Notes under the pieces: generated by a model
Databases searched by the model: none
Told to the model about the DNA's origin: nothing
Seen by the model: the letters and a program-made list of their open reading frames with translations, nothing else
Assembly: GCA_004431415.1 (NCBI GenBank)
Contig: QPMI01000263.1
Location: 48,156 to 112,155 of the forward strand
Source: Cyanophora paradoxa CCMP329
Lineage: Eukaryota; Plantae; Glaucophyta
Reading direction: 5' to 3'
Length of the DNA stretch: 64,000 nucleotides
Translations under genes and position numbers: made by a program
In this document: in pieces, positions 32,450 through 57,419 of the stretch
Numbering within the stretch: the first letter of the stretch is position 1
Layout of the letters: each line of letters opens with the position of its first letter

Positions 32450-33103
32450 CGCGCCGACGCGTCAACGCCGGCACGACGCCACCGGCCGGTGGGCGCTGCG
32501 GGCTCGGGCTGCGCCGCCTAGCGCCTGCGCGCTACGTTGTGGTCACTCACACGCAGCTCAGCCAGCTCGAGCTCGAGAACCGGCCGCGGCCTGAGAGCTA
32601 GCAGCTAGGAGCTCTTGGTGGAAAAAAGGATGGGGCGCCAGGCCCGCCGGGTACCGATACCGTGCGACTTTCGGCGCTGTTGGTGCTTTCGGCGCAGCCC
32701 CCCGCCCGGGCCCCCACCCCCCCCCCCGCATGTGTTCCGCGCGCCGGGTGTCCTGTTTGGAACTTTTAGTGTTCGGAGGTTTTTTACTGGTGATGACGTT
32801 CACCAGATTTTGCTCTACCCAGAGCGGGAGCACTCTGCTCCGAGTAACAGTAGTACAATGAACTATAGTACCTTTTCACCACACTACCAGGCCAGGCTGG
32901 GATTTTGAAACTAGGATATTCTAACTTACCTTTTGCTGCCGAATTTGACGTTTGTGACCTGGAAACTATGGCCGGTCTGAGCTTGGGGAAGCAAAAAAAT
33001 GCCACTGGAAACATCGACCAATGGTGTATTTGTCTCTTTCATTTGTTGAGTAGGAAAAAAACAAGCGGTTTCAGTCTGGGTAGTACTATGGTTTAGTGTA
33101 CCC

Positions 33104-33206
33104 ATGGGACCCTTTCGCTGGCAGAAAATGCCATGGGACCCGTTCGCTGGCAGGAAATGCCAATCGTTTACAACAGTATGGGACCCTCTCGCTGGCAGAA
33201 AATGCC
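33104..33206 (+). repeat. Three 29-bp direct repeats, consensus ATGGGACCCNNTCGCTGGCAGRAAATGCC
   Basis: Copies at 33104-33132, 33133-33161 and 33178-33206. Confidence 0.9.
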
Positions 33207-33437
33207 AATATATTACTACAGCGAGTTCAGTCAAAAAGCTTCAGTCTGAAACTCGGGAGATTTGGCGATTGGTTAAATTACCTTCATGGATCTTTCAAAT
33301 TAGCAAAAAATGGTGATCCAATTGAAAGTTATTAAGCAATTAAGTTTTGAACAGGTATTAGTATAATAATGACTCATATTTTATAAAAGAATACAAGACT
33401 CTGTTATTGTTATGTAAAATACAAGTTATTGTTATGT

Positions 33438-33907
33438 AATTTTAGGGGTACAAACATGCACATGTGACAAAATCTGTAGATATAATTAACTGTTGGTTCT
33501 GCAGAAGTAAAATATCGTATTACTGTTGGTTTATTAGACGAAGTATAGTTTGCCATCAGAATAAAATGATAAAAACAACGTAATTATTACAACAATCCTA
33601 TGAAAAAAATGACATCAATAAGATACTGTACACGTGTCAAATAAAAGAATCGTTATGTAATATATTCGGAAAAGTACAAAAATAAAAAAATGTGTACATG
33701 TGACACAATTTTAGGGGTACAAACATGCACATGTGACAAAATCTGTAATTATAATTAACTTTTGGTTCTGCAGAAGTAAAACATCGTATTACTGTTGGTT
33801 TATTACAAGAAATATAGTTTGCCATCAGAATAAAATGATAAAAACAAAGTAATTATTATACAAATCCTACGAAAAAAAGACAACAATAAGATACTGTACA
33901 TGTGTCA
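33438..33907 (+). repeat. Diverged ~200-bp direct duplication (period 269 bp) in the element's 5' non-coding region
   Basis: AATTTTAGGGGTACAAACATGCACATGTGACAAAATCTGTA...AATAAGATACTGTACA begins at both 33438 and 33707. Confidence 0.9.
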
Positions 33908-34063
33908 CAATGTGAGGGGTATATGTTTTGCATGTGACAGAATCTAGCCAAGAGACAACAGCAGCACAGCAACAGGTCAGTAGCAGCAGCAGTACCAGCA
34001 GAAAGCATCTTTCCAGCAGCCTAGGTTGTGCTTCTTCTTAGCTGCAGCCAGGGCACCATCTAC

Positions 34064-37000
34064 ATGGCAAAGGCTAGTAGCAAGAGGAAGCAAACAGTTA
34101 ATCCAGCAGCTGGTGATCCTGAAGAAGCTGTGGATCAAGAAGAGAAATCAGCAAAGCAAGACAAGAAGGAAGCTTCAAACTGCCCTGCTGGAATGGTGAA
34201 TATGGGTATCTTGTGCGCACAGCGCATGCGTACTCATGTGCTCAACCGCAGGTTCAGGCGCGAGTAGCCGAATCTGTGCAGACCATGCCAGAGGTAAGTT
34301 TTTTTTTAAAAAAAAGAAGAAAAAAAAGCACATTACAACTTCTGCATTACAGGTCGTGCCTGAAACTCAGACCTCAACAGCTTTTGCAAGCACAAAAAGC
34401 CCAATTTTGGTGAGTGCTTAAAAACAGATTACATCTATGTCCAGTATAGGTTTCTATTTGTGAGAACAATTTCACGGCTGCATTGCGTGTATAGTCTTAT
34501 GCTTTCCAATGCAGGAGAATCCTGGAGTTTCCAATGGATTGTCGAATGTGACAAGTTTGAACACACTTCCAGTATGTGCTTAATTGTGTAATGCCGGAAT
34601 GCAATCTATAATTGAAAACAATCGCTTTCTGTCACTGTGCTGATTGCATAATGCACAGAAGTCATCCTCCCCGGCAACCACTACACCGGTCTACAATAAT
34701 GTGAGTCTGTTTATATCTACATTACCGTCTACCAATGTACATCCAATAAATGACACTTCCATTTTACTTACATAATAAGGAATAGAGCAAACGAAGGAAT
34801 GAAACTATCTGCATTGTTTGGGTCGACTATATGTACACAATAAGCATAACTGAACAAATCAGACTTAAATTACATAAGCAACATTTTCAGTGCCGCGCCA
34901 ATAGACTGACTTTATACTTGATTAGGTTCCTGAATACGTGACTACAGCTTCGATGAGATGTCAAATTTGCAATTTTCAAACCAACAGCTTGGAGGTGTTT
35001 CGTGGACATATTTGCAATGGAGCACCAAAGGTAAAAAAACAGACAATTGTCTTCCATATCTTCCAGTATTTTTTCAACAACTCTGTATTACAGATGCAGA
35101 CATGCCTATTATGCTGTAACGTTTTCCCTTCGCAAGAGGTACTTCAACATCACTTGATCACTTGCAACGGTCCCCTACCAGCATCAGGAATCCAAATGGG
35201 TACGCATGTACTGTAAGTCTACAAATAGCCTACATTTAATATACAAACAGGGTCAATGCAACCATTCCCATTTTCATCTGCATCAATTGGAGGCATATCA
35301 GGAGGTTCATTATTGTGATGATAGAATACTGTATTGTAGACTAAATTGACGCACTACTCAGTAAATCAGCAACTTTTTCGTCGTGAATTGTTGCCCCAGA
35401 ATTCGCCTTCGATTTTCAATACTGCATTCCAAGGTGTTTGTCTTTCAAGTACCTATTCCACTTGACATTAACATCAAAAATGTTTAGGAACTCCTCCTTT
35501 ACTACAATTCAACATGTCATCGAAAACTTTACAATCATCTTCCTTTCCGCTACATTCTTCTATGTCATCGCCTGTTCTATCAAGCCCATTGAACCCTTCA
35601 TCTTCTTCAAGTGGTGGTATATATTGAATTCCAGCTTCCTATTGTACAATACTATAATTCACAATTACCTATCAGGTACAATGTTCAACACACCACCACC
35701 AAGTGTTTCGCCAATATCTTCAGGACCTGTTCATTTGCCGTCTTCTGTTAAAAAGAGCCTGAACTTTCAAGATCAAAGCGGATTACCTGTAATACCTTTG
35801 TTGCCAACAAAGTCCAGCCCTACTATAGTGCGTTATATTGCTATTGAATGCATTTCTTTACTTCATCATAACGATGTTATGAAAAGGGCAACAACGCCTC
35901 GACCATGGATTCTCTACTGGCATCTGCCAAGGAGGTATGTGTCAGAATATTTTAAATTGATTCTTTACATTAATTGCAAGTTTCGTAGATTGCTTCAAAA
36001 TCGCCTCATAAACCTGTACAACTACCTCCGGTAGACAGTATTTTAACTATCTTTCATTGCAAATTTCTTCCTGATATACAATTCTAGAACTCTATTGCGA
36101 TCTATGATATTCCTGGCCAGCCGCCAACAATTATCAGCCGTGACGTGCTACAGAACTTGCAGACGCTCGCATCTGATGAAGAGTACCTGCGGTCTGTTAC
36201 GCGGTTGCTAAACTACCCGTATTCCAAACAGACCAATCTCACTGTACACGAAAAACCTGCCAACCCATGGTGGGAAAAAGAATTATGTCAGAACACTTTT
36301 CCACGAGTTGCAGTTCAATTGCACGGTAAACTCTTTGTTTATTATATGCAATTCAATTAATCACATGAACTGTTTCCCTTTTATACAGATGACAGCCAAA
36401 CTCTATTTGTCGGTGGTCCATCCTTGTTATGTGGATGCTTGAAACTGTGTATTGTACGTGGCAGCAAATGGCTTGCTTGCGGCAACATAACTACTGCACC
36501 TCAATGTGAGAAAAATGGAGGGATGCGAAAAATTACGATTGTGGACTCTATGGTGAGAATAACCGTTATGACCTCTACCAAAACATAGACATACCATCTT
36601 TTGCAGACTCGTGACGTTGTTACAAGACAAGATTTACAGGTGTACTTTCCTAACAGTATCAGAAGCTTCCCAAATATTTCCTACTCTGTTTTCACAGTTT
36701 GTTATTTTTCTTTGCCCCTGCCATTCACGTGTATGTCATGCTGACTACTTCCAGTCTTTGCTACCAGACAATGATGACACTGTTCCTGCCGACAAGAAAT
36801 GGAGATTCCTCACAATTGTCTCTCCTTCACAAACCCAAAACATCAAGTCAACACAGCTCACCGAAGACATTGTTGGTGTCCAGGCAATCGGGCAGTCTTC
36901 CACTGTTCATGTACAGTCACCAATGTCACAACAAACAAGTACACCTGTACAGGTAACTGTAACAAAGACTGTATTACTCGTCATCAAATTAATTCAGCAA

Positions 37001-37672
37001 ACATAGAGTCCTATTTCATCACAGATTCTCCCCGGTGATGTTGACATGGTGCTGTAAATTAAAACTATCTAATCATCATTTCGCGTGTTCATATACCTTA
37101 TACAGGACCAGAACATGCTTTTCATTTATCAAGATCTTACAGATACAACTGTGCATTCGTATTTGATTACTGATCCTGTCATGGGTAATTCGTTTCAGTG
37201 TTCACCCCTAATGACGGCTTCTTGAATTTTTGGTTACACAGATGCTATGTTGAATGCTTCTTTTGGTTACACAAATACTCGAGCGGCATATATTGGAGAT
37301 GATATTCAGAAGTACTTGAAAACGGGCAAGCTGTTCCAATCAACAGACGTCGAGACTGCGAAAACCGTCTGTCTTTCTATAATCTCACTATGAACAGCAA
37401 CGAACATCTAATGCAATGAACAGCCATGCAAATGCATCTGTATACGGCCATTAATGCAGAAGAAGGATGCCGTATCTGTGTCTACTCCAGATGCAGAACA
37501 GGTAACAACAATATATCATCATTTCCAATTACCCAGTAACATATTGCAGATGTCCTATGCAATGAGCAAAATTGTGACAAAAGATGCTTCAATTTTACAA
37601 GGTTACCGATCATATATTTCTACAAGCTCTTCACTGGTGCGCATTGCAGATATTCTACGAGTTCAGTCGTGA
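34064..37672 (+). CDS. Element ORF1: >20 small exons, Ser/Pro-rich, with two CxxC...H..C zinc fingers
   Basis: ATG 34064 (MAKASSKRKQ). The frame stays open to TGA 37670-37672 when introns of mostly ~50-60 nt are removed. Fingers: CQICNFQTNSLEVFRGHIC and CLLCCNVFPSQEVLQHHLITC. Confidence 0.7.
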
Positions 37673-38365
37673 CTAGTAAACATTACCTTTGATCATAGAG
37701 AAAAGTATGTAATAGATAGATTTTCCACGGACTTCCAGGAGTCTATTTCTATCGCTACGTTACCGGTAGCTGATATCCAGTTCGATATGGAATCAACTCC
37801 GCCAAAATTCAAATTCATAGCATGCTACATAGAGAGGAAAACTCCAACAGACTTGTGGAAATCATTCATTGATGGTAGATTGTATTCTCAGCTGCAAAAG
37901 CTCAGTGAAACAGGAATTCGTTTCCTACTTTTAGTAGGACCAGAATGTGCTAGTCTGCATACTCACAATTGCCGTGAAAGCTTCCGTCTATTCAATGACA
38001 TCGGCATTCTACACTCCATTCCTACAGTACTAGCAGACTCTGTATCACATATAGAGCAAATTTGCAATAGAGTAAAACAGTCACTTAGTACTGCTACTTG
38101 CTGGCGGCCAATGTTTATGCTTGATAGAACATGTTTAATAGGAGCTTCATCGTTATCTTCTTCAACGTTAACGACAGACCAGAAAATTTTACAAAACATT
38201 ATTTTTCAACTACCACAAATAGGACAAAAAACTTCTTTCCGCATAGCTTCTCAGTATTCTTGTATTGCAGAGTTCCTAAAACTTTTACCTAGCAATTTCC
38301 CCATTCCGAGCATACATATTTCTAAGCAGAAATTGCTTCGTAAGCATTTCCTTGGTACTGAGTAA
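37673..38365 (+). CDS. ERCC4 (XPF/Mus81-family) structure-specific nuclease domain with HhH, in frame with ORF1
   Basis: ITFDHREK (DxRE), TLPVADIQF (LxxG/AD), YIERKTPTDLWKSFIDGRLYSQLQKL (ERKxxxDLxxSxxDGRxxxQ), FLLLVG, and HhH-like QLPQIGQKTSFRIA. The first motifs lie upstream of the first Met (37787). Confidence 0.85.
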   Translation, partial: LVNITFDHREKYVIDRFSTDFQESISIATLPVADIQFDMESTPPKFKFIACYIERKTPTDLWKSFIDGRLYSQLQKLSETGIRFLLLVGPECASLHTHNCRESFRLFNDIGILHSIPTVLADSVSHIEQICNRVKQSLSTATCWRPMFMLDRTCLIGASSLSSSTLTTDQKILQNIIFQLPQIGQKTSFRIASQYSCIAEFLKLLPSNFPIPSIHISKQKLLRKHFLGTE

Positions 38366-41300
38366 TGGTGCCCTCTCAGGTAATTTCGAACTGGATAATA
38401 CAACTTCTCATTTTATGTGCTGTATTATCAACTGCAAATGCGACCAATACCGGATTCGAACATGTGCGCTTCTTAGCAACCAGTCTACAATTACATTTTA
38501 ATACTAATCTGTTTGCAGGACAAGTCTATTGTTGCCTTACTCACCTGCACCAAATGTGCTGCAGTTTATCATCTAACACGATCTTGCAACATAGCGGAAT
38601 GGAAACCCAGTTGCTTACATAATAAAAAACTCATGACGTGGACATGCCTATTATGCAAGGTACGCATTAATATTTGTATATATACATGTACACGATCTGC
38701 AATAAACAGTCTAACATATTCCTAGTTTACCACTTCAACTGTTTTGCGGGAAGACCGTTATGAGTCTCATTTCAAATCACATTTACATACAAGTTCACAA
38801 GACACTGCTGCGAACTTGCACTGGCTTCAATTACATTGCATGAACTGTGCAACAAACAATACACTAACATGGTCTGGACTTGCTGAGTGGGAGCCAACAT
38901 GTGGCCATGAACAAGATGATTACCTCTGGTCATGTTCATTATGTCTGGTAAATTATGCTCACTTGTTTTTACTATTCCATATCTTCCCCACTGATGATCC
39001 AACAGATGGAGAATTTCGTATTATACAAACTTGGAAATATACGACACCACTACGAGTCAAAAAGACATGAAAACAGTACGATGGAAACACTTGCAGGTGG
39101 TGGTCCACGTGCAAAGCGTTCAATGAACCCAGCATTACAAGCAGAAGTGGGAATTGACAGACCGCTTCCAAAATGCAATCAAGAATGCCACGAATTCTTC
39201 CCTCTGTGGCATATACACCCGCTTGCATTTACAACATGTCGACTTGAGCCTCTTCCAAACATTAATGGAAAACAAGGTTACTGCGCTGTTCCTGGCTGTC
39301 AACTGCCCCCCTCCCTATGTCCAACAACCTATACTTTGTGGCCTCCGTATGCTATGGCGCATTGCTGGACATTTCATTCTCAACACATGCATCGTATCCA
39401 GAAACCTACTTTTGCAAACTACCTGCTTCACAGTACGGACAAAGACGTTCAATGGTGTAATGGTGATGGGGATATCATTTTGGCTGCTGACCGTGACAAA
39501 TGGAGACAGCGTCTCTGGGAAAAAATCAACCTCCGTCCTGTCACATACTGCCATTACGATGGCCGCATGCTCTATCCTCACGAAGTTCGCTTTGCAGCTC
39601 CTAACAAGTATCCAGAATTCCATACAACAGTCCCCCAAGCTCCAGGTTACCCATATATTTTACTCAATCTTACCCTACAAATTTTTCATTCAATACAGGT
39701 TCCGTGGCTGGATTTGTCTGTGGGCGATGCTACAACTACATTAAGACCAACAATATCGATTTCTTTAAACCTCTCAACATTCCTTGGGATTATGGACAAC
39801 CACCGGAGTGCATTACAAGTGCATACTCTGGTTGAAATTCATGTTTCTATTAATTCACTGCGTTCAATAGAATTGAACTTCATGGAGCGGTCATGTCTTG
39901 GCGACGTACAATTTATCAGTAAACTAAAGCACAGAGACTGCCTAGGAAACGCCTTTGCATATGCTCATCAAACTGGCCTCGGATATCCGGTTCTTCGTTG
40001 CGCTCAATACGAAGGACTTTCTTCCTTCCCCATTATAAGTGAGTCATTACAGAAGACAAATCCTATTCGGCCGCATGCTGTATTGGAGGCGCGTCAACAT
40101 CTTCAACAAGTACGGCAATCTACATTTGCAATACAGGATCTCCTGACTAGAACCACTCTTCACTCGCAGCCGCGAACTGTGAAATCTGTAATGCAGGAGT
40201 ATTATTCAAAACAGACGGTAGGTTTCTTTTGAACAGTACAATTTACTTATTAACATATTGCACGTGCCGCAGAAAAATATGCCTTCAAATGACACTGAAC
40301 TCAAAATCGTTACCTTACGGCTCTCTTCTGGCAGAACTATTGACATATCTGTTCCCTTGGTTTTACCTTCAACATCCATTCACAAACTCCCGAAGAACCA
40401 TGCAATAGTGCCTGACGAGTTCCTCAAGAACGCTGAAGGTTATGGACTGTTAACTACATCTGCACCATACCATTCTGAAATGGGTGATCAAGACGGCAAA
40501 TTCCCACGTGATCTTTGCATTGCTTTTGAGCAGCGACTGGGCATTCCCCTTCGACTCAAGGATTTCGGTCGACTTGAGTATGAGTTATTTCCACACTTAT
40601 TCTACAATGGTTTAGGAGTCTACAATGGCAGTATATCAGTTCGAGAGCATCTCAAGATAAAACTATGTGGGTATGATGATCGCTTCCGTAACGATCCGAA
40701 GTACATTGCAACAGGCACTTCCTATCTTGATGAGCAGGTCATTCCTATTTCTCTTATTGCACGTTTAAAACAAACACAAACATTTACGACAGTCACTCTG
40801 GGGAATGCCTATGCGCAAAGTAACGCCTACATTTCAGCTGGGTGACACCAACCGATTTGTGAACTCCTCTACCTTTGTTAAAAAGAATGACAAGGGAGAA
40901 ATATTGTACAAGCAAGGACCATCTATCTCTGTTTCTCCAGCATTGCGCGGAAGTGTGCAACGGAAATTGAGTCATCGACATGATATATATGCTTTAGTTC
41001 GCGAACATGGTCCACCACGCTACTTCTACACATATTCAATAAGCAGCAAGTGGCAATTCTGGAAGAATCTTACTAAAGAAGAGCTTCGCTTTCGGCCACT
41101 TGAAACTGTGGAAGGCTTCCGACAGTGGCAGAGAAACATGCAAGAAGGTCTATTTTCAAAGAAATTTGGAGTTTTCCGATATGCAACACACTACTACATT
41201 GTTATCGAATACCAAAAGCGTGGTCTACCACATGTCCACATGCTTGTTTGGGTCGAACCAGGTCAGAGCTCACTTTCTTTTTTGCTCGACTTGTTATGAT

Positions 41301-44300
41301 CCATTCAAATCGTGTAACACAACGTTCAATAGGATCTCCAAGAGTACCAGTAACTGCTTCATTGTCGGATTTCTCTCCTGCTGTACGGGAGCGTGTTATA
41401 CGCAGACACAACATACATGTCTGCCATAAATTATACTGTTTGGCAAACGGTAATGAACTAACTTTGATTATGACGTACATTGTTTTCTTATTGCCCTTAC
41501 CAGGGCCTTGCCGCTTCCATTACCCTCACCCAATACATATTCATGGTAAAGATTGTGAGGATCCCCAGCGCTGCGAGCTACCAGAGCGAAGGACAGAAGA
41601 GGACCGCTACGTTGTGCCCACAAGTAATGACGCTGCTGCTTTCATTCCTTCAAATCAATGTCTTGTGGATCTCAGCGACGATCCCAAAAAGGCTCTTGAA
41701 TTTGTGTACCGCTACATTTCCAAGTATGTAACAAAAGGCGAGCCAACGGAAGACAGCGACATGACAAGAACATTTCTTTCATCACTGCACGAGTCTATTA
41801 CAACAAATGAGGAAAGCAACGTAAGTTTCTCCATTGATTACATTGAGGTTGAATTGATTGATTATGCGCAGGACACTGCTGATAAACCGCCAACATCAAC
41901 AGGGCAACCTGACAAACCTGCAAAAAAGGTACACTAAACCAATCTAATACAATCCTCTTCATTACACATAATTCGAATTTTTCTGCTCAGAAACCAGACT
42001 ATACACAGAAGTATAACAAGCAGGCCAGAAATGATATCAAGCACCGTATTCAAGGCAGCCCTGAAATGATGACAAACATTCTGGGCAGAGTTACCAAGAA
42101 ATCAACAGATGCGGTTCGTTATCTGGAGGTGGCACCCCCGGGACAACGAAACAGATATCTACTCACATTGAAAATCATGCGTGAGCGGTTTCAATTAAGT
42201 CACGATCAAGACCTATCAGCAGAGGACGTAATGTCTGCAACTAAGTGGGAACAGTATTTGAAACGCGACGCCGAATACCACACATACACATACTCCGAAT
42301 TCTGGTCTCAATTTGATAGAGTACGCAACGACTATAAAAAGCGCAACAAACGCATAGTCGTCCGAACTCATATACCCAACATTCATCACAAGCGTGAAAA
42401 CTACTTCTACTTATTGCTGGTCTCATTGTTTCATTGGCCACACGACATAGTCAATTACACGGTACTTTTATTGCGATACTAAAGAAAGCTTATTCAATAT
42501 TATTTACATGCTTTCAGGCGGCAACAGATTACTACGAAGCTCTATTCAACAAACTAATGAGTTCGACACCTGAATTGCAAGAACTGGCTTCATCTATTCT
42601 ACTCAGTGCTCAGACACGTCACACTGACATAAAAATTAATAACCCAGAAATTGATCAGCACCTTTTTGCACGTGGCGAGTTGAAACTCAACTTCATCAAC
42701 GAAGAAATTCCCTACTACTTTACACACCAGTCAGTTGCAGAAACTCTCCAAGATGTCCACGACAGCATTGCTATTGGTGTATCTTCCAGTGACTACATAG
42801 AGCGTCAACTAGCTCTAATCGACCTCGTCCAAGAAGAAGCACAACAATGCATAGGTGGAAAATCTAATTTAAATATAAACAATTATACAACATATATAAC
42901 GACATTTTTACATACATGGTCATGCAGATGATGCGGCGGCCCCAATAGACATAGACGAACAACCCACAACACCGGTTACTCTACAGCCAATGGAAGATTA
43001 TACAACGACAGCAATGGTAATTTTACTACAAAGCTTTTTACTTGAATTCCTACAATTCAATACAATGTTCATGATGCAGGTTGAAGAGAGCACGACTGCC
43101 ACCCCTTCCAAAAGTCTCAAGCGCCGGTTTAATTTCAAGCCGCGAAAGCCACGTTTAAGAAAGCCAAGGAGGACATTCAACCCTACGACTGTTCTCGCAA
43201 CATCTGCAGCCAACGAGGATTCCCCTGGTCTATAATTTATATCACTCTAAATACGACCCGTTATCAAAACACTAACAAATATACACAGATGAAGCAGATG
43301 AATACGAATTGGAAAATTCCATGTCACCAACAGCAATTGACCACCTACTCACCGTTCAATGGAACACAGAACAACAGGCCTTTATACACTCTGTTTTGCA
43401 CAGTACCAACAATCTCTACCTTGCTGGCCACGCTGGAACAGGAAAATCGTTTACTTTGCTCTACTGCATTGCTTCTTTACGGAAATCTGGACGGCATGTC
43501 CGATGCAGCGCTTGGATGCAAAATGCAGCTCAGCGTGTCAGTGGCTACACCGTGGCTTCTCTTACAGGTGTCTATGTTCAAGGCGAGGCTATTGAAACAG
43601 TTGTCAACCGCGTAAAGAACAACAGAAACCTCCAAAATTTTTGGATCGACACTGAAGTCTTCTGCATTGATGAGATTTCAACACTACATGCAGATATATT
43701 TTGCACACTCGATTGTGTCGGCAGAATCATAAGAGAAAAGCAGCTGCCTTTTGGTGGCATGAGACTTGTTATCAGCGGTGATTTTTGTCAGGTAATTTGA
43801 AATTTTACACTTCACGTTATTTCACGTTTCACAAACGTAATACAGCTTCCACCTGTACAACCCAAAGAACCACATCAATCACGTAATACAGGTTCGGGCT
43901 TATCAAAAGAAGTGCACCGGCCCTACGTCTTTACTGGAGAGACATGGGAAAATTGCGACTTTCGAATTTTTGAGCTCACAACTGTTTACCGGCAAAATAA
44001 AGACCCTGGCTTCATTGAAATCGTAAACGAGTTACGGCAAGGTCCGTTTCTTCGTTTTCACTTGCTTTTTCTTGAAAACAAAACCTATCTCTAACCAATT
44101 CTACACAGGAAATCCCCTATCGAACAACATCATTCAGTTCATTCTCTCTAGGATGCAGCCAGTGCCAATTGAAAGGCAGCATGAGCTTATTGATTTGAAT
44201 GGACAGCGCAGGGGAGTTGATCACATTAACCAGCGCCGACTTGAACACCATCCCGGACAACCTGTGACCATCCTGTCTCTTGATGAAAACACTCTCCCAA

Positions 44301-46089
44301 CAGCTGGGACACCTATGGATTTCAACAACACTGGTTTATTACCAGCATTTACTTTCAAGTTCAATGCTCCTGTCGTCCTTCTCAAGAACACCCGTCAAGC
44401 TCGAGTTTTCAACAGCGCAGTGGCAACACTTCTTTTCATGGACAGTACTGTGCGACCTACAGATGATAACATTTATCCAGTGCGAAATCGAATCTTGCGA
44501 GACAAAGTACCTCTTCCATTACGACAAATTCTTGTTGTTCAAGTGCGCATTCACATGGGTTTGAGGCCGACATCCGACTGAAATTTTACAGATGCATGAG
44601 AGTAATGACATTGTCCGTATTCCTGCTTACAAAGCGACTACGAAAAAATACTCCGTAATACACGAAGAATACTACACAATAAGCCGCACACAGTTCCCTC
44701 TTCAATTGGCTTGGGCTGCTACTATCCATCGCCTACAAGGAATCAAAGTCAATGCAATGCGCACCGCTGTTGGACGATCAACAAATTGGGATCCTGGCAT
44801 GACATACACTTCCTGGACTCGAGTCGAATCAGGCAACGATCTTTATTTTCCCATTCCAGCAGGATCCAAAAGACAAGCTTTCGTTGACAACCTACTCAAA
44901 TTTCAGCCGTACACGCACCCACTTGTGAAGCTCGCCATGAAAGTATTTACTCACTACGCCAAAACTCATGAACCATGTCCACGCATTACATCCACTTCCA
45001 CATTCCCAGCAACAATTGTAGGATCCATAGAGTCTACTACTGCATCCGCCGCCCAGCATACAAGATCGGAAACCCTGACAATGGCTTCAATGGGCCCAGT
45101 ACAGTCATCAAATGCTCAGCAGCGCTGCACCTGGTTCATCAACAGTTGCTTTTTTGATGCAAGCCTACTTTGCTTCGAGGCCTGCTACAAGGACGACCCA
45201 GCAGCATGGGATTACAGTTTCGATACCCTACATCCAGCAGAACGGTTACTCTTGTCTTTTTTCAAACAGCTCGACAGAAACTCCATCTCATTAGCAGCAA
45301 TGAACACCACACGAGACACTCTTCGAAAAATGCTGGTTGATGTTGCACATGTCCGCAACAGCAATTCTCCTTACACGACGGAATCCTTTGGAAGCCTCTT
45401 GGAAACTGTAGGCCTCTTCGTGTTTCTATTTCCCAACTTGGCGAAAATTTTCACGACACGGAGAAATGTTCGTCTAACATGTGCCACGTGTGAGTTTGCT
45501 ACAGAATCGGAAGACGCCCTACTACCCTACTTTTCTGTTACACCTGACACAAACAACTCCATCGACCAACCGTGGAATGTTGTTGCACAGCTCCTCCGTA
45601 ATTTTACAGGACATGTACCTACACACCGATTTGCAAGTCAGTGCATTGCCTGCCATGGCGAACTCGAGCCCCATATTACAATCACATCATGGCCTACTGT
45701 CCTTGTGGTTGACATTGGTGGGCCAAGTACTCCTAACAGGCTTCAAAGGTTACCTGAAACAATACAAGTTAGCCCGTTTTCACTACTACTACTGTTGCTG
45801 CTGTTAGAACCCAACTAAATTCGATCAACAGGTACCTAACGTTGGACAGTATAACCTGTGTGCGGTTGCTGGACACCCGCATCTCCATTTCAACGCCATT
45901 GTCAGAATGAAACATTCAAATTACAACTCATTCATCTACAAATACGATGACCTTCCCACAGCCTCTGGTGGCACCAACGGAGCCCTGCTACCCTATTGCG
46001 CCTCGTTTGCTTCTTGCCCCGCTATATCCACTACATTTCCGTTATCACGAGCAGTGGTGCTTTTTTATGTGAAATCCATAGCTTTGTAA
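38365..46089 (+). CDS. Element ORF2: RepHel transposase (zinc fingers, HUH Rep, PIF1 helicase) with a C-terminal USP/peptidase C19-like domain, ~19 introns
   Basis: Rep: FPHLFYNGLG, DDRFRNDPKY, LRGS, GPPRYFYTYS, VIEYQKRGLPHVHMLVW (41201-41251), CRFHYP, YISKYVTKGE (41713-41742). PIF1: GHAGTGKS (43426-43449), IDEIS, PFGGMRLVISGDFCQ|LPPV, LTTVYRQ, RTQFPLQLAWAATIHRLQG. USP: NSCFFDASL, YNLCAVAGHPHLHFNA, YKYDD, AVVLFY. Confidence 0.9.
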
Positions 46090-46320
46090 CAAGTGCCACT
46101 TATTACATGCTACAACGTACACTGCAAAAATAGACGTTACGTATTTAAAGACAATAGACGATCGTAACACATACGCTGTAATACACATTCCGCTGTAGCT
46201 GCCGCTTATTACGTGGAACTTAATACACTGCATACATAGACGATACGTACTCGTAAAATAAAAGGACTCCCCAAGCGATACCAATTACGTCCACGACAAA
46301 AAAAAACCAGACACATATAC

Positions 46321-46380
46321 CCAGCAAGCAAGCGGGGGGGGTGCGGGGGGGGCGGAGCCCCCCCTGCTTGTCTGCACTAG
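46321..46380 (+). other. Right-terminal hairpin and candidate 3' end of the element
   Basis: Stem-loop GGGGGGGC-GGA-GCCCCCCC (~46346-46364), followed by CTTG (46367-46370) and CTAG (46377-46380). Confidence 0.75.
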
Positions 46381-46772: not shown

Positions 46773-48488
46773 ATGGGCGCAATCACTTCCCGGCGAGCTC
46801 GCGTGGAGCCGACGACAGCTGCGGCAGTCGAACCGGATTACGTGACCATCAAACCTGTGCAGAGGCCCCGACAGGCTTCGACGGCCCGCGCTGGCGCTCA
46901 GCAGAGTCAGGTCCCTAGGCCTGACAACCCGCCGGGGGAGCTCGAGGCGAGTGGCGCGACGGAGGGTGTTGGCGTTGTGAGTCGGCTTGGCGCTCTCAAG
47001 GAGCAGATTGCACGCTACATTCAAGAGTACGAGCCCCGGGAGGGCACTGTTCAGGAACGCTCTGCCTGGTACTCTCGCTACTCTGCGAAAGAGGGTGCGC
47101 GGCGCCGCCCGAGCGTCCTCCGAGTCGTCGGCGCGTGCCCGGCGGCCGACGCGTCGGTGGCTGTAGGTTACCGGCTGCTGCTCTCGGCGGGCCTCTCGCT
47201 GCCGGCGCTGGTGGCGCTGGTGAACCACGACCGCTTCGCGAGGCGCTGCGAGGAGTGGGCGCCGGCGCTGCTCGCCCTCGCCCTCTCCGAGCTCGCCGAC
47301 CGCGGCGCTATCCGCCTCGAGCCCTCGAACGGGGTCGCCAACGGAGACCGTGCGCCCTGCCGCGCCCGCCCCGGCCCCGCGCGCCGGAAGCGAGCGCCGC
47401 GCGCAGTGGCGGCGCTCGACTTCGTGGTGGTGCTGGTCCGGTCGGGCGTCGCGCGCGTGCGGTCGCCGCTGCTGAACGACTTGCTGCGCTTCCTGCGGGC
47501 GTCGGGCGGGGCGGCGTCGGCGGCCGGCCTCTGCCGCGCCTACCTCGCCGTCCAGGACATCGGCGTCGTCCACGCCGGCCACGGCGGAGGCTGCTCCCGC
47601 GTGCGCGCCGCCTCCCCCGCCGGGCCGCCCCGCGCCGCCGCCGATCGCGGGCGGGGCGGGGCAGATGGCCTGGGTGGTGGCCGCCGAGCTCGCCGACGCC
47701 GGCCTGAAGCGCACCCTGCGCTCCGCCGTCTCCGCGCCCCGCATCGCCCCCGAGGCGGCGGCGGCGCCGCCGCACCCCCGGGGCGCCCCGTCGAGCGTCG
47801 GCGCGCTGCTGGGGCGCCGCTCGGGCTCGCTGGACCAGGGCTCGACCCTCGTGCAGCCGTTGCGGGAGGCGCTGAAGCGGCCGACGGCGCCGCTGACGGA
47901 GGAGGGGAAGCAGGCGGGGGTGGGGGCGGTGGTGTACGCGCGGGCGGTGCACGAGGCGGAGCGCTGGGGCGGGGCCCTCTCGGCCCTCGCCCCCGCCGAG
48001 CTCGAGGCCTTCCTCGCCGAGTGCGAGTTCGCCCCCGGCTTCGAGCTCCCGCCCTCGCCCGCCCCCTCCCCCGCCCCGCCCCGCCGAGCCCGCCCGGAGC
48101 CGGCGGCGGCAGGAGGCGGGAGGCGGCGTGGGGGTCCCCGGCGCCCTGCTCGGCCAAGGCCTCGCTCTTCCTGCTGGCGCTCTCGGGGAGCAGCGGGGGC
48201 GGCTGGCGCGGCGGGCGGCGCGGCGGGGCCCCCGCGCGAACGTGTGCCGGGCGCTGCCGGGGCTCGCTCGCGACTCGCTGGGCCACGCCGAGCTCCTCTC
48301 CCGCCTCCTTTGCATGAACCACGCGGGCGAGGCCCCCTGGCAGGGCGACCTCCCGTGCGCCCCCGCCCCCCCCCGCCCCCCCCCCCCCGCCCCGCCCCCG
48401 CGCTGAGGGCGCCCGCAGCTGGCAGCACGCCTGGGGGTTCGACTTCTACGCCGACCGCGACTTCTCCGACGCCGACCACGACGACTAG
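46773..48488 (+). CDS. Hypothetical protein, putatively N-myristoylated, with a GPP34/GOLPH3-like motif; paralogue of 49359-51527
   Basis: Starts MGAITS. Contains LSLPALVALVNHDRFARRCEEWAPALLALALSELADRGAIRL...SPLLNDLLRFL...VAAELADAGL. Ends WQHAWGFDFY...DD* at TAG 48486-48488. Confidence 0.65.
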
Positions 48489-49358
48489 CCGCGCTAGAAG
48501 CGTGAGAGGGCGCCCGCCAGCCGGTTGGCCTCGGAGAGGGCACCGATGCTCCCAGTGCTCGCCCCATGCATCGACCCCCCGTCGAGGGGCCTCCGCCTTA
48601 GTCCCTCATCGCTAGTGAGGCGTTTCAATCTCGCTTTTTTTTTCGGCGGCTATTCTCGAGCTCCTCCCCCGCGCACCTTTGCAAGTCTCCATTTTCCGCG
48701 ACACGGTATTTATCACTAGCTGGGGCCTGAAGGCACACGTTATTGCTTTCTTCTCTAAGAAGTGTTCTACACCAGTTTATGATGCTTATAATTAGCTACA
48801 GCTTTAAATTATTTTACGTTGGCCTATTTCGCTGTATCATCTATCGTATTGTTCGCTAGCTGCACAGAACTTGACATCATGGCATAGCTGCTCATAATGA
48901 AGCCATCATACCTGGACGTGACACGCGTACGCCGCGGCGCACTGCGGTACAGCAAACAAACCCGCCCGCGGCCTCTACACTGTGACACGTGCACATCTGT
49001 CAATCACTGATGAGTCATTAAGCCTGAATTCAATGATCATGATTCGAAATTCGAAGCATCAAGCGATCATCATGGCATCCGATATATACTTAAAATGTTA
49101 TCATAGTATACACTGCACGCCGCAGTGCACATGCACATGCATGACTCAGTGACTCGTGATCAGTGACACAGATCCGGAAGGCTGGCGGAAGCATGCGCAT
49201 AGATCACTGAGAGTCAAATTCGTGATGATAATTAATTACCAAGTTACTTGCAGAGATCAGAGAAGCCCGTATAAGTACGCGTACGTGCGCGTATATACGT
49301 AGGCAGCGATTAAGGCGCACACGAAAGCCGCTAAGCTGGCGTCGACGGCAGCCGAACG

Positions 49359-51527
49359 TCAAGTCAGCTTGGCGCGGGCCGAGTCGGCGGCGGCGTGGGA
49401 GGGGTCGAGAGAGCGCGAGCTCGCCACATCACCGTCCCTGTCGCCCTCCTCTTCCCGGCACAGCGCCGCCACCCACGGGTTCTCCCACCTGCGCGGCGCC
49501 GGGGGTGCGCTCGGCGGCAGGCGGAATCAAGGAGGCGCGGGGGGCCAGGGCGCACGTGTGGAGGCCCCAGGGAGGGCGCCCCTCGCTGCGGGAGATGAAG
49601 AGGATGCGGCTGGCGGCGGGGGTGAGGCGGGGCGGGGGGGCCGGGGGCGGGGAGGGCACGAGACGGCGTCGGCCATGTCGATGGAGGGGTCGCCCTCGGC
49701 AACGCGCCCGAGGCCCGGCAGGGGGCCCCGCCCCGCCGAGCGTGCTCGCAGGGGGCCGAAGCGGGGCCGGAGGGCGGGGGGGATGGCGAGGAGGAGGAGG
49801 GCGGCGGAGTCGCAGTCGGGCCCCCCGAGCAGGGGGCGCCCCAGGAGGGCCCCGAACTCGTCGGGGGGCAAGCAGGAGAGGGCGCCCCACGCCGCCTCCG
49901 CCTCCCACAGCGCCCGCCCCAGCACCGCCGCCGCCACCGCCGCACCCTTCCCCGCGTCCGTCAGCCCCGCCGACGGCCCCCGCACGTCAACCGTCTCCCG
50001 CCCCGCCCCCGGCCGCCCGGGCTCCTCCGCCAGTGGTGCGGGCGGCGCCAGCGTGCGCGGCCCGGCGCCCGGCGCCGGCGAGCGCGAGGCGGCGCGGGGC
50101 GCGGGAGAGAGGGAGGGGAGAGGCCGGGGACCGAGGCGCGGCGGGCGGCGGCGGGGACGGGCGCCGCTCGTTGGGGGCCAGCAGCGCTAACGGGACCGCC
50201 GTCAGCGGCTCCGAGCCGCGCCGCCCCGCGCCCGCCCCGGCCGCCCCGACGAGCCCGGCCCGGAGCCGATCCGCGGCGGCCGCGGGTGGCGGGCGGGGAG
50301 GATGGAGAGTCGCTCCGGCGGGCGCGCTCGGGCGCTGATGGGCGGCGTGAGCGCGGGCGGGGCGGGGCGGGGCGGGGAGGGCGGGAGGTAGGGCGGAGAG
50401 GCGGGGCGGGGCGGGCCTGGGGCGTAGAAGACGCGCTTGAAGCCGGCCTCGACGAGCTCGCTCGCCACCAGCCCCGCAAACTGCCGCCCCGGCCCCGCTC
50501 GCACCTCGGCCGCGGGGGGGGGGGGGGGGGGGGGGGGCGGCGAGGAGGTGGGAATGGGTGGCAGGGGAAGGGGGGGGGGGGGGAGCGGATGGGAAGGGGT
50601 GGCGGGTGGGGGTTTGGGGTGGGGGTGGGGCGCCTTGGAGAAGGGCCGCCCGTGGGGCTCGAGCTGGGAGTCCGGGTCGGGCTGCGGGGCCGGCGGGGTC
50701 GGGGCGGGGCGCGGGGCGGCGGGCGCGGGTGCGGGGCGGGCCTGGGCGATGAAGGCGAGGGCGAGCTCGCGGGCGGAGGCGGTGGACTGGCGGGCCACGA
50801 GGAACTGCAGCAGCGCCGCCAGCGGCGCGCTCCGCTTTGCCAGCTCCGGCGGCTCGCTCTCCGAGAGGCCCACAAGAAAGTCCGCCCCGGACACTGCCCC
50901 CGCCCCGCCCCTCGCGCCCCGCGCGCGCGGGGCGGCGGGGCGGCGGGGCGCACGGTCCCCGTCGGCGATGCCGTCGGCGTCGAAGGGGGCGAAGGAGAGG
51001 GCGCCGCGGTCGGCGAGCTCGGAGAGGGCGAGGCCGAGCAGCGCCGGCGCCCACTCTTCCGCCCGCTGCGCGAAGCTTCGGTGGTTCACCTGCCGCAGCG
51101 CTCGGAGGGGCCCCAGGGGCCTGGGCCGGGGCCGGGGCAGGCGGGCGGGGCCGGGGCGCGCCAGGGCGACGAGGGCGGGGAGGGAGAGGCCGGCGCGGAC
51201 GAGGGCCGTGTAGCCCTCGCTGGCGCTGTGCCGGGGCCGCTGGGGCGACGGGGCGCCCGACTCCGCGAAGCGCGGCTCCGAGCTGGAGGCGTGCGCGTTG
51301 GCCGCCAGCCGCGAGCGGAGCAGAGCGCGCAGCGCCTCGAGGTACGGCTGCTGCCCCAGGCTCCAAGGGCAGCCGTGGAGGATCGGAATGGCCTGCACGG
51401 GCGGCGGGGCCGAGGCGCGCCGCAAGCCCATGCCGAGGCTCGCTTTTCGCGGGCGCGGCTCGCTGGTTTGAGCATCGAGCTTGGCTGTTGGCGAAACCTG
51501 CGTCGTCTTCGAGCCTCCTCCACCCAT
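49359..51527 (-). CDS. Hypothetical protein, putatively N-myristoylated, with a GPP34/GOLPH3-like motif; paralogue of 46773-48488
   Basis: Starts MGGGGS. Contains LSLPALVAL|VNHRSFAQRAEEWAPALLGLALSELADRGALSF...APLAALLQFL...VASELVEAGF. Ends WENPW...AKLT*. Confidence 0.65.
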
Positions 51528-51951: not shown

Positions 51952-54900
51952 ATGGCGCAGCTGGCGAGTGCCAGCAGCGCGGCCACTGCAGCGATCGAAG
52001 AAGAGTGGGCATCGTTTGGGTGGGCGGAGGTCGCTCACCCAAAAGAAGTACTCAATTTCGACTTCAGCTTCAGCAAGGTTCGAGCCCCGCCTCGGACCCA
52101 CGCGCCAGGTGCTACGCCGCGCGTGGGCTCCGAGCCGCTGCAGTCCGCCGGTCCGGTCGCAACGGCGATCCGGGATCACGCCCTGCGCTTCCTGAGCTCC
52201 CCGCACGCACATGATATCCGGTGGCCTCCTAAGCACCCGTCTAATTTTGCCATGCCTTCCGCAGTTGAACGCTGTCCTGATTGCAATCGGCCGCGCTCTT
52301 AAACGCAACAATCTGACGTTTGACAACGTGCGCGCGCGCTACGCTCAACGACAAAGGGGCTGACCGCCCCCCTCAGTTGGCTGCCGTCGTCGATGGGAAG
52401 CCGGACAAGAGCGAAATCGACGGGATCCGCGAGAAGGTCGTCATCATTGAGAAGGCCGTCAGTGACAAGGCGGACAAGAGCGAGGCGCGCGGCCCCTCCC
52501 CCGTCGCCCGATCGCCGGCCCCGCGACGCGCGCGGCGACAGGTTGGGGCGCTGCGAGAACGCCTGGAGGCGCAGGAGCAGAAGCTTGCCGATGCAGAAAA
52601 GGTGCGCTGGGGTGGCGCCCCGGGCCGCCGGGGGCGGGGCCGGAGAGGGGCGCGGCGGGTGCAGGGGCACGCGGAGGCGATGAAGGCGCTCGCCGAGCGG
52701 CTGGCGGGGGTCGAGCAGGCCCAGAAGGACGCCCAGGCGCCCGCCCGCGCTCTCCCCCCTCTCTCCCCTCCCCATCGCCCCGCGCCCGACGCCCGCCCCC
52801 CGCGGTAGGCGCAGCTGGCAGCTCTCCAGGGGCACGGTGCAGCGGCCGCCGCCCCCGCAGCGCCCGTGAACTCCACCTCGGGCGCTCCCGCGGCGTCCAG
52901 CGTCGATGGTGCACCGCACCACGCCGGGGCGCGCGCGGTGCGGCGGGGGGCCGAGGGAGGGGCCGCCCCGCAGGGGAGCGCCTGGGGCGGGTGGAGAGGG
53001 AGCTGGGCGAGCTGCGCGGCGGCGTGGCGGCGCTCGCCTCGAAGAAGGCGCTCGAGGAGGAGACGCGCGCCCTCGCTGCCGCCCTGGACGAGCTCCGCGC
53101 CCAGCTCGCCCAGCTCCCCGCCCCCAAGGTGCCCCCGCCCCGCCCCCCCGCCCCGCGCCGCGGCCTCGGAGCGCAGCGCGACGGGGCGGCAGGAGCTGGA
53201 GCGGGTGCGGGGGGTGGCGGAGGGGCGGCGCCGCTAGCCGACCTGCGGCGCTCGGAGGAGGAGGCGGCGCGCAAGTTCGCCGCCAAGTCCGACCTCGCCC
53301 GCCTCCAGGCGCCCTGCCCCGGCCCCGCCTCACCTCACCCCGCCCTCTGAGCCCCGCCGCCGCGCAGGATGCGATGGCGGCGCTGGCAGCGGCGCAGGCA
53401 GGGCGGGGCCGGGGGAGGGCGCCGGGGCGTCGCCCGCGGAGCTGGCGGCGCTGATGGCGGCCTCTGCGGGCCCGGGGGCGGCGGAGCTCGCCGGCCGCCT
53501 CGAGGAGGGCCTCGCCTCCTGCGCCAAGGTGCCCCGCCCCGGCCCCCGCGCCCCCCGCGCCCCGACCCCGCGCGACGCCGCCGGCAGCTCGCGGATCTGG
53601 ACGCATTGCGGGCGGCCCTCGCGGCGCTCCAGGCCGACGCCGCCGGTGCCGAGCGGCGGGTGCGGGGCGGCGCCGGGCCCGCGAGGGGCGACCCTGAGGG
53701 GCGGGGCGGCAGATCGGCGAGCTCGCGGCGGCCGACGAGCGCGCGCGCGCCGACCTCGACGCCCTCCACCGCGCCCTCGCCGCCCTCGAGGCCCGCCCCG
53801 CTGCCGAGGCCCCCGCCCCGGCCGCCGGCGCCGGCGCCGTGGGGGCCGGCCTGTGGACGGGGTTTCCCGGCGTGGAGCTGGAGGCGATCGCGGGGATCGA
53901 GGCGGCGCTGCTCGAGGCCGGCCGCGAGCTCGTCCGCCTCCAGGCCGCCGCATCCTCCGCTGAACCGGCCGTTTCCTCGTCCGCCGGCCACCCCGCACCT
54001 GCTGATCCCGCTGGAGCTTCCGGCGCCGGGGCGGGTTCCGGTGCCTGGACTGCCGTGCGCGCAGGGGCGGCGCGGCTGCTCGCTCGGCTGGCGTCCATCG
54101 AGGGCGACATAGCCGCTTGCTCCGCCGCCCTCCAGCCTCTCGAGACCGCTGCTGCCGCCGTTGCTGTCGCCGCCGCCACCACCGGAGATTCGCACGGGGC
54201 GGCGGCGCTGAGCGCAGCCGGCCCGCAGCTCGCCGGCTCTCGCCTGCGCCATTGCGGTGTGCACGCGGCCGTCCTCCGCGCGGCGCTGGAGGCGCTGCAG
54301 GGGTCCGGCGTCGGCAGCGGGGTGGGCGGCGCGGGCGCCGCCTCGCCGGAAGTGGCGGAGGCGCTCGAGAAGCTGCGGCGGCGCCTGCGCGAGCTCGAGG
54401 CGCGGCTCGCCGAGCTTGAGAGCGCCGGGCCGCCCCTGCCGGCGGCGGCGGCCGGCGTCTCGCCGGAGCCCGAGACGGCGCGCGTGGCGTCGCCGAAGGC
54501 GTCGGGCGGCTCCGGGGCGAACGCGGCAGCTGCGATCGAGGCGGGGCGGCCGGCGAGCCGAGGCGGGGCGGCGGCGCTGCGGCTCGCGAACGCGCTGCGG
54601 GGCGAGGTGGACGACCTCGGGGGCGGCTGGAGGCGCTTCAGGCCGGGGTGCGGGGCTTGCAGGCCGGCCAGGAGCGCGCCGCCGCCCGCCTCGACGCCGA
54701 GGCCGAGCAGCGCGCCGCCGCCATCGCCGCCCTCCGCGCGTGCGCCCGTCCCTCTTCCCCCGCCGCCGCCGCCCGAACGGCCGCCACCGCAGGGCGCTCG
54801 AGGAGCTTCGATCGCGGCTTACCAAGGCCGAGGCCGACGCCCGCGCCACCGCTGCCGCCGCCGCGCAAAAGGGCGCCGCGGCGGCAGCGGGCGGCGTAGC

Positions 54901-56559
54901 CCCGCCGGCGGCAGCGGGCGGCACGGTCGGCCTCTCCGACATCCACTCGCGCCTCGATGTGCGCCCGCCACGCCGCCGAAGCGCGCCGGGCGGCGGCAGA
55001 GGCGGGGAGTGCGGCAGGGCCTCGGGGCACGGGTGGCGGCGCTGGAGGCGGCGGGACCGGCGCTCCACCTCCACGACGCGATGCCCCTTACGCCCCACAC
55101 GCCCCACGCCCCCGCCCTCGTGCGCGCGGCGCCGCGCCCCCTCCGCAGCTTGGCCGGCCAGCTGCAGGAAGGACCCTGAGCCTCGCTTGCGCAGGGGCCG
55201 GGGGCGACGGGCGCGGAGGAGCTCGCGCGGGCGGTGGCGCGGCTGGAGCACGCCAAGGCTGACACCGCCATGTTCCGCAAGGTTCCGCCCTGCCCCGCCC
55301 CGCCCCGCCCCGCCCCGCCTCGGCGCAGGGGCCGACGCGGCGGCAGCTCGCGGGGGAAACAGCCGATCTGCGGGCTTCCCTCGACGCCCTTCGCGGCCAG
55401 CTCGCGTCCGACGTGCGCCCGCGCGGCCTATACTTCTCAGTCCCTCTCGTGCTCGCCCGACGCCGGCGGGGCGGCAGTTCTCGAGCCTGGCGGCCAAGTC
55501 AGAGATCGACTCACTCCTCCGCGCTCTGGCGAGGCCCCGTGGGCCAGGCCTCGTCCCCGGCGGGCTGACCTCGCCGGCAGGAGGCGCTGCGGGAGTCGGT
55601 GCAGGGGCAGTTGGACCGGAAGCCGTCGCACGAGGAGCTTCGCGAGCTGCGCGACGCCCTTGCTCGCCTCCAGGAGCTCTTCGACAGGTGTGCTCGCCCG
55701 GACGTGCGGCGCGGCGGGTCGTGGCGCTGCGTAGAGGAGCTGGGCTGAGCGGGGGCGGGGCGGGGCGGCGGCAGGCTGCAGGGTGAGGTGCGCGAAGACA
55801 GCGAAGCACGGCGGCGGGCCATTAAGGAGGCCCTCGACCGCCTCCGTCGCCACCTGGAAGACAAAATGTGCGCACTCGGGGGCCGCAACCCTCTTAGCAG
55901 CGTCCAGATTGCCCACTGCCCCTCACTGCCCCACGCAGACACAAGCTGCACGACAACCTCACCCGTACCGATGACACTGACTACACCCGCGTCGGTCCGC
56001 CTGCCTCGCCGCGCAACGCAGCTCGCCGTTCGTGGGGCCCAGCGCAAGTGCAGGACGGGTGCACTACCGGTGCCTGGGGTGCGATCGTCCAACAAAAAAG
56101 ATGATCGGTGTTCCCGTCGAGCACGTCGTCCATGACGCTGTGCGTGTACAACGAGCCCTTCCCTCTGCCCCGCCACTGCCACGTGAGCGAGCTTGGCGAC
56201 AGCTGCCTTTCCGGCCCCCGACGGTGCCGGCGCTGCTCTACGACCACGCCTCGGGACGACCGGCGATCGGCCCGCCCCCGGGTGCGACGATGGGGACTGG
56301 GAGCGGCGCGTCGCCAGCACTGGCCCTGCCGGGCCCCACGAGTCAGTCGATGCTAGCCACTGTCAGCAACTCCACCTCCTCCCTCGATGCGTGCGCCTGC
56401 CCACCTAGGCATCCGTCTGTCCCCAACGCTCCCGACCCGCGAGCGCTGCGCAGGTCCCCCATCAAAGCGATCCGGGGCGCGTCCCCCATTCTGCCTGCTG
56501 TCGTCTCGCCGAGCCGTCTGCCAGGCCCAGGCTTTGCATCCCCGAAGGGTGCTTCCTAG
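51952..56559 (+). CDS. Long coiled-coil protein with KADK/KSD repeats and a C-terminal CxxCDRP motif (DUF4795/QRICH2-like); complete copy 1
   Basis: ATG 51952 (MAQLASASS). Contains KPDKSE, KADKSE, AAKSDL, KADTAM, AAKSEI and GRVHYRCLGCDRPT. TAG at 56557-56559. The family call is from recalled motifs. Confidence 0.6.
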
Positions 56560-56982
56560 CGCAGAGCTCTTACAGGGTCCAGCCTGCCCGCGTGCAAATT
56601 TGCACAGTTCCACCCGCCATGTATAAAAATAACAGAAAACAAGGATACATAAGGTTACACAGATAGTTCGATAGAAATCCGCTCATTTCTATACAATACA
56701 GAACTTTTCGGGGAGAAATAGAAAAGAAGTTGCGGGTACTGCCCTCAGTCTTCCTCTTTGACATAATATCAGGTGTTCGCTAGCTAACCATTCGTAAACG
56801 GCCGATGGCATTGATGCATGCGCAACGGCCAATGGCCAGACTCGTCGCTTACTACGGAACAACATTTACATCGCAAATAAAATCGACGACGACTATCTCT
56901 CGCGACGACAATCCCTGTTTTGAACACACGAGGGTTACCTCGTAAAGCGACCTGGCTTGCTGTGTCCGTGTCGAACTGTGTC

Positions 56983-57124
56983 GAACTGTGCTCTCAAGAT
57001 TCGGGTGCACAATACTATGTGGAACTGTGCTCTCAAGATTCGGGTGCACTATTAATACTATGTTGGACTCTGCTCTCAATGCAAGATTTGGGTGCACAAA
57101 CCTATGTGGAACTGTGCTTTCAAT
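56983..57124 (+). repeat. Minisatellite, ~3.5 copies of a 39-44 bp unit GAACTGTGCTCTCAAGATTCGGGTGCAC(N)ATACTATGTG
   Basis: Units start at ~56983, 57022, 57065 and 57109 inside an AT-rich spacer. Confidence 0.85.
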
Positions 57125-57419
57125 ATACCGCTCAAGAAGTCAGTGATTAATGTTGTTTACTTGCATTATATTACTTACTGTTGTTGATTACTGTTCCTAC
57201 TGTTGAGGCGTTAGAGAGGGGACAAAATAACTGCGCCCACTTTCAAGTTTCGCTTTTGGAAGCGACCAAACAACTTCGCGAAGGACGGGCATGCCGCCGC
57301 CCCTAGCAGGTTGACTGATAACACAGAATCCGCCAAAGTCCGCCAAAATTCCCCTTCAAGGGCCGAAAACCGCCCGTGGAGCGCTTGGCTGGGACGTGCT
57401 GCAGCCAGCAGCGCCAGCA

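Follow-up and report, generated by a model that had tools for sequence, protein, structure and literature searches.

The window, i.e., the whole 64-kb stretch of DNA that was analysed, comes from a eukaryote whose introns are short and whose GC content is very high (70–83%), and includes, at ~32.6–46.4 kb, a low-GC island of 41% GC. In the GC profile, values range between 0.34 and 0.47 inside the island as compared to 0.58–0.85 in the flanks; CpG is mildly depleted in the island relative to the host. The original prediction placed two long spliced open reading frames in this island, and we reproduced both with exon models built independently from the sequence, in which phase and stops were verified exon by exon. 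The element that harbours them is almost certainly Helitron-like. Its features are the following.

32613..46380 (+): Helitron-like element, delimited by the GC profile; its 3′ end is well supported, its 5′ end (TC at 32613-32614) is approximate
32613..34063 (+): 5′ non-coding region, in which a 29-nt unit is tandemly repeated (33102-33221) and ~200 nt are duplicated
34064-38365 (+): ORF1, modelled with 23 exons and 924 aa
34926..35199 (+): two C2HC-type zinc-finger exons (zf-C2H2_ZFHX3, E 1e-4; zf-LYAR, E 0.045; both below cut-off)
37677..38365 (+): ERCC4 (XPF/Mus81) nuclease with HhH-like tail, in a single 689-nt exon
38363..38367 (+): TAATG, in which the stop of ORF1 and the likely start of ORF2 overlap, from the exon models
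38365-46089 (+): ORF2, modelled with 18 exons and 2208 aa
40793..41820 (+): HUH Rep (Helitron_like_N, E 1.7e-18)
43289..44900 (+): Pif1-family SF1B helicase, in four exons (PIF1, E 6.8e-22; Pif1 matches in PDB)
45132..45960 (+): putative USP-like cysteine protease (motifs by eye; UCH_1, E 0.024)
46326..46380 (+): GC-rich hairpin (46326-46370; fold z -2.3), then terminal CTAG (46377-46380)

Both spliced ORFs are predicted to be open throughout, phase-consistent and without stops. All 39 introns are of the GT-AG type, with a median length of 57 nt (48–75 nt in 35 of the 39) and 34% GC versus 43–45% in the exons; 34 of them are required, as an in-frame stop or a frameshift is left otherwise. The modelled donors and acceptors score well above background, in a comparison that is partly circular since strong sites had been picked. 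Independent support for the exon models comes from the ORF2 exons, which align in the correct order on the HLE1 and HLE2 transposase profiles. Intron length in the element matches the donor–acceptor spacing peak of the host (45–69 nt), and the element is, therefore, plausibly spliceable in its host. In style, the introns are reminiscent of those of the glaucophyte Cyanophora. The low-complexity N-terminal half of ORF1 is the least certain part of the models. Searches were run exon by exon, which lowers sensitivity mostly for the intron-split USP-like domain and the middle of ORF1.

The predicted 3′ boundary (46380) stands, being placed at the hairpin and CTAG, while the predicted 5′ boundary (32614) is compositional, though the change in the flank fits it: AGCT/CTAG-rich, host-like flanks end at ~32613 and restart at 46381, with divergently oriented host genes on either side. 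The window has 118 CTAG sites, none of which has a better upstream stem than the hairpin before the CTAG at 46377; a hairpin followed by CTRR is the 3′ terminus expected of HLE1. The 5′ boundary at 32613/32614 is a guess from composition. The two copies of the duplication in the 5′ non-coding region (33438-33639 and 33707-33907) are 93% identical, and neither a hairpin nor a clear subterminal inverted repeat was found at the 5′ end. Inverted repeats joining the two ends were rejected as candidates, as the only matches were G/C homopolymer runs, in a comparison limited by the uncertain 5′ end. The base after CTAG is C, not T, and a C also stands before the TC at 32613; a canonical A|T target was seen at neither end of this one copy, of which the 5′ end is approximate. 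No second copy of the element occurs within the 64-kb window. Its sequence suggests that it is probably an autonomous, intact-looking and young insertion.

ORF2 specifies, in this order, Cys-rich repeats, a Rep, a Pif1-like helicase and a USP-like tail. Motifs 1, 2 and 3 (YxxxY) of the Rep are located at 41021, 41207-41239 and 41713-41727, respectively, and the sole PDB match of the Rep exon is Helraiser (7LCC; E 1.5e-5). The helicase carries its Walker A at 43426, its Walker B at 43666 and a further motif at 44691. As is characteristic of the superfamily, an HUH/Y2 Rep is fused to a Pif1-like helicase in one ORF, and the Helitron-like identity predicted originally is borne out by the Helitron_like_N, Helraiser and PIF1 matches and by the 3′ hairpin with CTAG. 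The predicted domain order likewise holds for the fingers (with weak Pfam matches), ERCC4, the HhH-like tail, Rep and PIF1; the USP call was too firm, as the UCH_1 match on 45420-45767 (E 0.024) is below cut-off. By eye, the tail shows motifs in what we take to be the USP order: Cys-box-like at 45132, CxxC at 45480 and 45642, and His-box-like at 45850-45951. The tail has no match in PDB and its fold model is of low confidence; the C-terminal domain of ORF2 is, by its sequence motifs, a probable USP-like protease. Such a tail on a RepHel is no novelty: UCH is already known from, and marks, subgroups c and d of HLE2 (PMC11417382), and activity is established for other DUBs of Helitrons (PMC9741609). 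DUF6570 gave no Pfam match on ORF2 exon 4 or parts of it, with a faint likeness by eye at the exon end, and no AP endonuclease match was found. Matches to NT5C and WD40 were dismissed as chance.

ORF1 runs from a charged N-terminus through two C2HC-type fingers, a Ser/Pro linker and a middle part without domain match to ERCC4 and HhH; ~700 of its 924 aa lie outside the nuclease module. The ERCC4 region passes the profile check: the last ORF1 exon matches Pfam PF02732 (ERCC4) with an E value of 1.2e-7 and 32.1 bits, above the curated cut-off of 24, and has the ERK and acidic residues (DHRE at 37691, VADI at 37766, ERK at 37832, IDGR at 37868), with the HhH motif at 38210. In PDB, this exon is closest to archaeal XPF, Hef and Mus81, and via a three-sequence profile, E values against PDB are 1e-11 to 3e-8. 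Two alignments show the DxRE, D, ERK, D and DGR residues all retained; the Glu that is usual in the next strand, behind the DGR helix, aligns with Val in ORF1, and the first HhH hairpin aligns with Aeropyrum XPF at a low score. Single-sequence folds of the ERCC4 exon and the protease-like tail both had pLDDT <40, so that fold searches were uninformative. Going by the profile matches and alignments, the predicted ERCC4 domain is real and keeps its main catalytic residues, and ORF1 probably encodes an active nuclease. Enzymes of the XPF/Mus81 group cut flaps, forks and nicked junctions; archaeal members are homodimers.

The nearest sequences are compact ERCC4+HhH proteins, 26–29% identical to the ORF1 module, one (P0001) on a 1-kb metagenome contig and the other the product of an ORF from an IMG/VR contig of 241 kb, taken for a giant virus. 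This identity is too distant for the donor lineage of the nuclease to be assigned. ORF1 has in common with XPF/Mus81/Hef and with the compact archaeal/viral proteins the nuclease motifs and HhH-like tail in one module of ~230 aa, but differs from both in adding a zinc-finger N-terminus of ~700 aa and in lying inside a transposon. ORF1 very probably is part of the mobile unit, as it lies inside the island and has composition and intron style in common with the RepHel gene. As predicted originally, the low GC of ORF1 argues against recent capture from the present host. Exons 14–17 of ORF1 (36088-36952) show a faint likeness by eye to a degenerate SET domain and post-SET Cys cluster, without a Pfam match in searches of the separate exons. 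SET cargo is known in the proto-Helentron.

The TAATG overlap of the two ORFs is a new feature, absent from the original prediction. Its ATG is the only one found that keeps the two Cys-rich exons of ORF2 in frame, and alternative first introns of ORF2 (donor at 38380 or 38464, acceptor at 38518) are both in phase 0 from this ATG. There is no spacer between ORF1 and ORF2 and no room for a terminator or promoter. One fused ORF was rejected, as the donors before the stop are in phase 1 and the strong acceptor needs phase 0; a weak cryptic acceptor near 38484 would permit the fusion. With the donor at 38464, ORF2 would begin with a hydrophobic, signal-peptide-like stretch (38365-38463), probably an accident of AT-rich intron sequence. 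Possibly, TAATG links ORF1 to the transposase gene; a 5-base overlap by chance, or an internal promoter, is also possible. To our knowledge, a DNA transposon with TAATG coupling would be an unusual case. Stop–restart coupling at UAAUG occurs in influenza B, a hypovirus and the retrotransposon SART1 (PMC5972666).

For placement among Helitrons, HLE1 references were collected using a Rep motif; the HLE2 references, from bacterial MAGs in which they are probably contaminating host DNA, are of the RGSPH type only (subgroups a, c and d are probably missing), and plasmid Pif1 genes were included. The Rep exon scores 61 bits on the HLE1 profile versus 29 bits on the HLE2 profile, a comparison biased by the motif-selected HLE1 set, exons 5, 10, 15 and 17 score better on the HLE2 profile, and the N-terminal helicase exon scores highest against stand-alone Pif1. 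The Rep/helicase phylogeny suggested in the original prediction puts the element outside the well-supported clades of sampled HLE1 and HLE2 in both the Rep-exon and helicase-exon trees, but on very long branches; AU tests on the helicase reject sisterhood with neither HLE1 (p 0.24) nor HLE2 (p 0.20). With a position outside both clades and undecisive AU tests, the element is unclassified and, as far as these alignments go, probably deep-branching. Other unclassified lineages are known, the Paramecium clade (PMC13085455) and unclassified HLEs (PMC11417382).

Individual traits are mixed. In Rep motif 2, HLE1 has L without a preceding R, and HLE2 S with a preceding R (PMC4067079); the element has L with no R before it, as HLE1 and not as HLE2. 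It further resembles HLE1/Helraiser in its Rep–helicase order, 3′ hairpin with CTAG and possible 5′ TC, but differs in its Walker B (DEIS, found in none of the HLE1 references), its helicase exons, which match Pif1 and not Helraiser, its additional ERCC4 ORF and protease-like tail, and the C after CTAG. With HLE2 (Helentron, Helitron2), it has in common the DEIS Walker B and a C-terminal UCH-like domain, an HLE2 trait (PMC11417382), whereas it is without RGSPH and without matches to DUF6570 or AP endonuclease, and neither asymmetric inverted repeats nor a T|T target were found, given the approximate 5′ end. Compared by description only, the proto-Helentron of Phytophthora also mixes HLE1-like ends with non-HLE1 protein traits, but its Rep signatures are those of Helentrons and its target is A|T; the third clade in Paramecium, likewise compared by description, is also outside HLE1 and HLE2 (PMC13085455), but its elements are telomeric. 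ERCC4 is reported for neither. These mixed HLE1/HLE2 traits bear on Helitron classification.

Homologue searches with exon queries returned no relative among proteins of 0.55–1.75 times the exon length, a range that full-length RepHels exceed, and related-locus scans and exact look-ups also gave no relative of the element. A length-independent search with the ERCC4 exon yielded one weak match among 1.8 billion representatives, i.e., no close ORF1 relative among them. ERCC4 was found beside the Rep motif in 0 of ~180 fetched HLE1 and HLE2 loci, most of which are short; a scan of viral contigs for the Rep motif was blank, and Rfam gave no match. We found no paper that pairs a Helitron with ERCC4, in agreement with the original claim: by title, those co-mentioning XPF/Mus81 are meiosis or genome papers, and ERCC4 is absent from the 19 accessory domains named in the text of HELIANO (20 in its full list). 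The pairing, thus, looks unreported and also unreplicated, in one copy. The label “new system”, for which it was originally put forward as the best candidate, overstates one unreplicated copy for which the searches found no relative; a new Helitron subgroup with an ERCC4 nuclease as a resident gene would be plausible.

The conversion of the single-strand transfer product of a Helitron into a finished insertion is usually ascribed to host repair. In Helraiser, RepHel acts by peel-and-paste via a circle, and the hairpin serves as terminator (PMC4778049). By analogy, the RepHel of our element would nick the left end, peel off one strand and stop at the hairpin, after which a circle would form and integrate by strand transfer (PMC4778049). 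ORF1 would be a long-resident accessory gene of the element itself, probably transcribed together with ORF2, the two being coupled by stop–restart at TAATG. Its product would be a self-contained, probably homodimeric ERCC4+HhH nuclease cutting single-strand/double-strand junctions, and its likeliest job would be flap trimming or opposite-strand nicking at the donor or integration junction, so that filling-in of the insertion would not have to await host repair. In this it would be comparable to two unrelated nucleases of other Helitrons, AP endonuclease and GIY-YIG, whose role is undetermined (PMC8788227). The USP-like tail would shield the transposase or edit local ubiquitin, a role already suggested for DUBs of Helitrons (PMC9741609).

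We give a probability of roughly 0.45 to the reading that the nuclease acts directly in transposition, on branched donor or target intermediates. In its favour we count the Rep, PIF1 and ERCC4 matches, ORFs intact over 39 introns, shared low GC and intron style, the retained nuclease residues, the missing inter-ORF spacer, the precedent for UAAUG coupling in SART1 and viruses (PMC5972666), the host-like intron length, the compact ERCC4+HhH proteins as nearest sequences (one on the presumed virus contig) and the recurrence of accessory nucleases in Helitrons (PMC11417382). Counted against it are the single copy, the lack of relatives in the searches and of ERCC4 at the fetched loci, the Glu-to-Val change, the absence of an A|T target and the fact that Helraiser transposes without any accessory nuclease (PMC4778049).

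That RepHel alone is enough in Helraiser (PMC4778049) also speaks for ORF1 being resident cargo that acts outside transposition chemistry, by limiting DNA-damage toxicity, by attacking rival elements or viruses, or via its N-terminal domains. Most of ORF1 is, indeed, not nuclease and without domain match, and for many of the cargo domains that are stable in Helitrons no role is known (PMC11417382, PMC8788227), but the branched-DNA specificity of the ERCC4 family suits rolling-circle intermediates and the stop–start overlap suggests co-expression with RepHel; we consider such a cargo role somewhat unlikely. It is improbable that ORF1 was picked up just once, from a virus or an earlier AT-rich host, as a passenger that is confined to this family or copy and on which no selection for the element acts. 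Helitrons capture genes readily, the nuclease sits graft-like in one long exon and no second instance was found, but captures are mostly fragments (PMC4067079), whereas ORF1 is intact over 22 introns, has the GC and intron style of the RepHel gene and adjoins it without a spacer. A composite, with ORF1 from a separate insertion, or an island that is a misjoined AT-rich contaminant would accommodate the undefined 5′ end, the missing A|T target, the lack of further copies in the window and the near-identical tandem segments elsewhere in the assembly, but is very improbable as the island ends exactly at the window's best hairpin with CTAG, no terminus-like feature or spacer lies between the ORFs and intron length is host-like.

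Direct action in transposition could be part of a bolder proposal, a third protist Helitron lineage beyond HLE1 and HLE2, spliced and bicistronic, with a stop–restart RepHel and an XPF/Mus81 resolvase needed to finish integration. We regard it as doubtful; if it were true, the second-strand step of Helitron transposition would become directly testable. New at this locus are the accessory ERCC4 nuclease, the possible bicistronic layout and the unclassified position, while the DUB-type tail is of a known kind. A nuclease family with a well-known substrate preference in an intact element offers a direct handle on an element-encoded resolvase.

Two sets of contigs with RepHel genes were encountered elsewhere. 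GVMAG contigs in IMG/VR, assigned to giant virus MAGs (L144, with an open frame of 1676 aa, and L154), carry HLE1-type RepHel genes, either from Helitrons in viruses or from host contamination. Many GTDB bacterial MAGs carry Helentron-type RepHel contigs (L165–L185), most likely eukaryotic host contamination.

Within the window, further small low-GC patches (5000-5700, 14200-14560, 20800-21900) have no similarity to the element. A host gene for the spliceosomal helicase Aquarius lies on the reverse strand at 9078-11492. Right of the element, 47219-47387 and 50919-51090 form an inverted paralogous stretch of 82%, and the gene there has a diverged opposite-strand copy, with a low-GC patch (48600-49300) in between. 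At 52794-64000, a host gene region is present in several tandem segmental copies that are 98% identical, the second of which is preceded by an AT-rich patch of ~800 nt with internal repeats (56600-57380); an assembly artefact could account for this arrangement, as could a non-autonomous element that has transduced host DNA.
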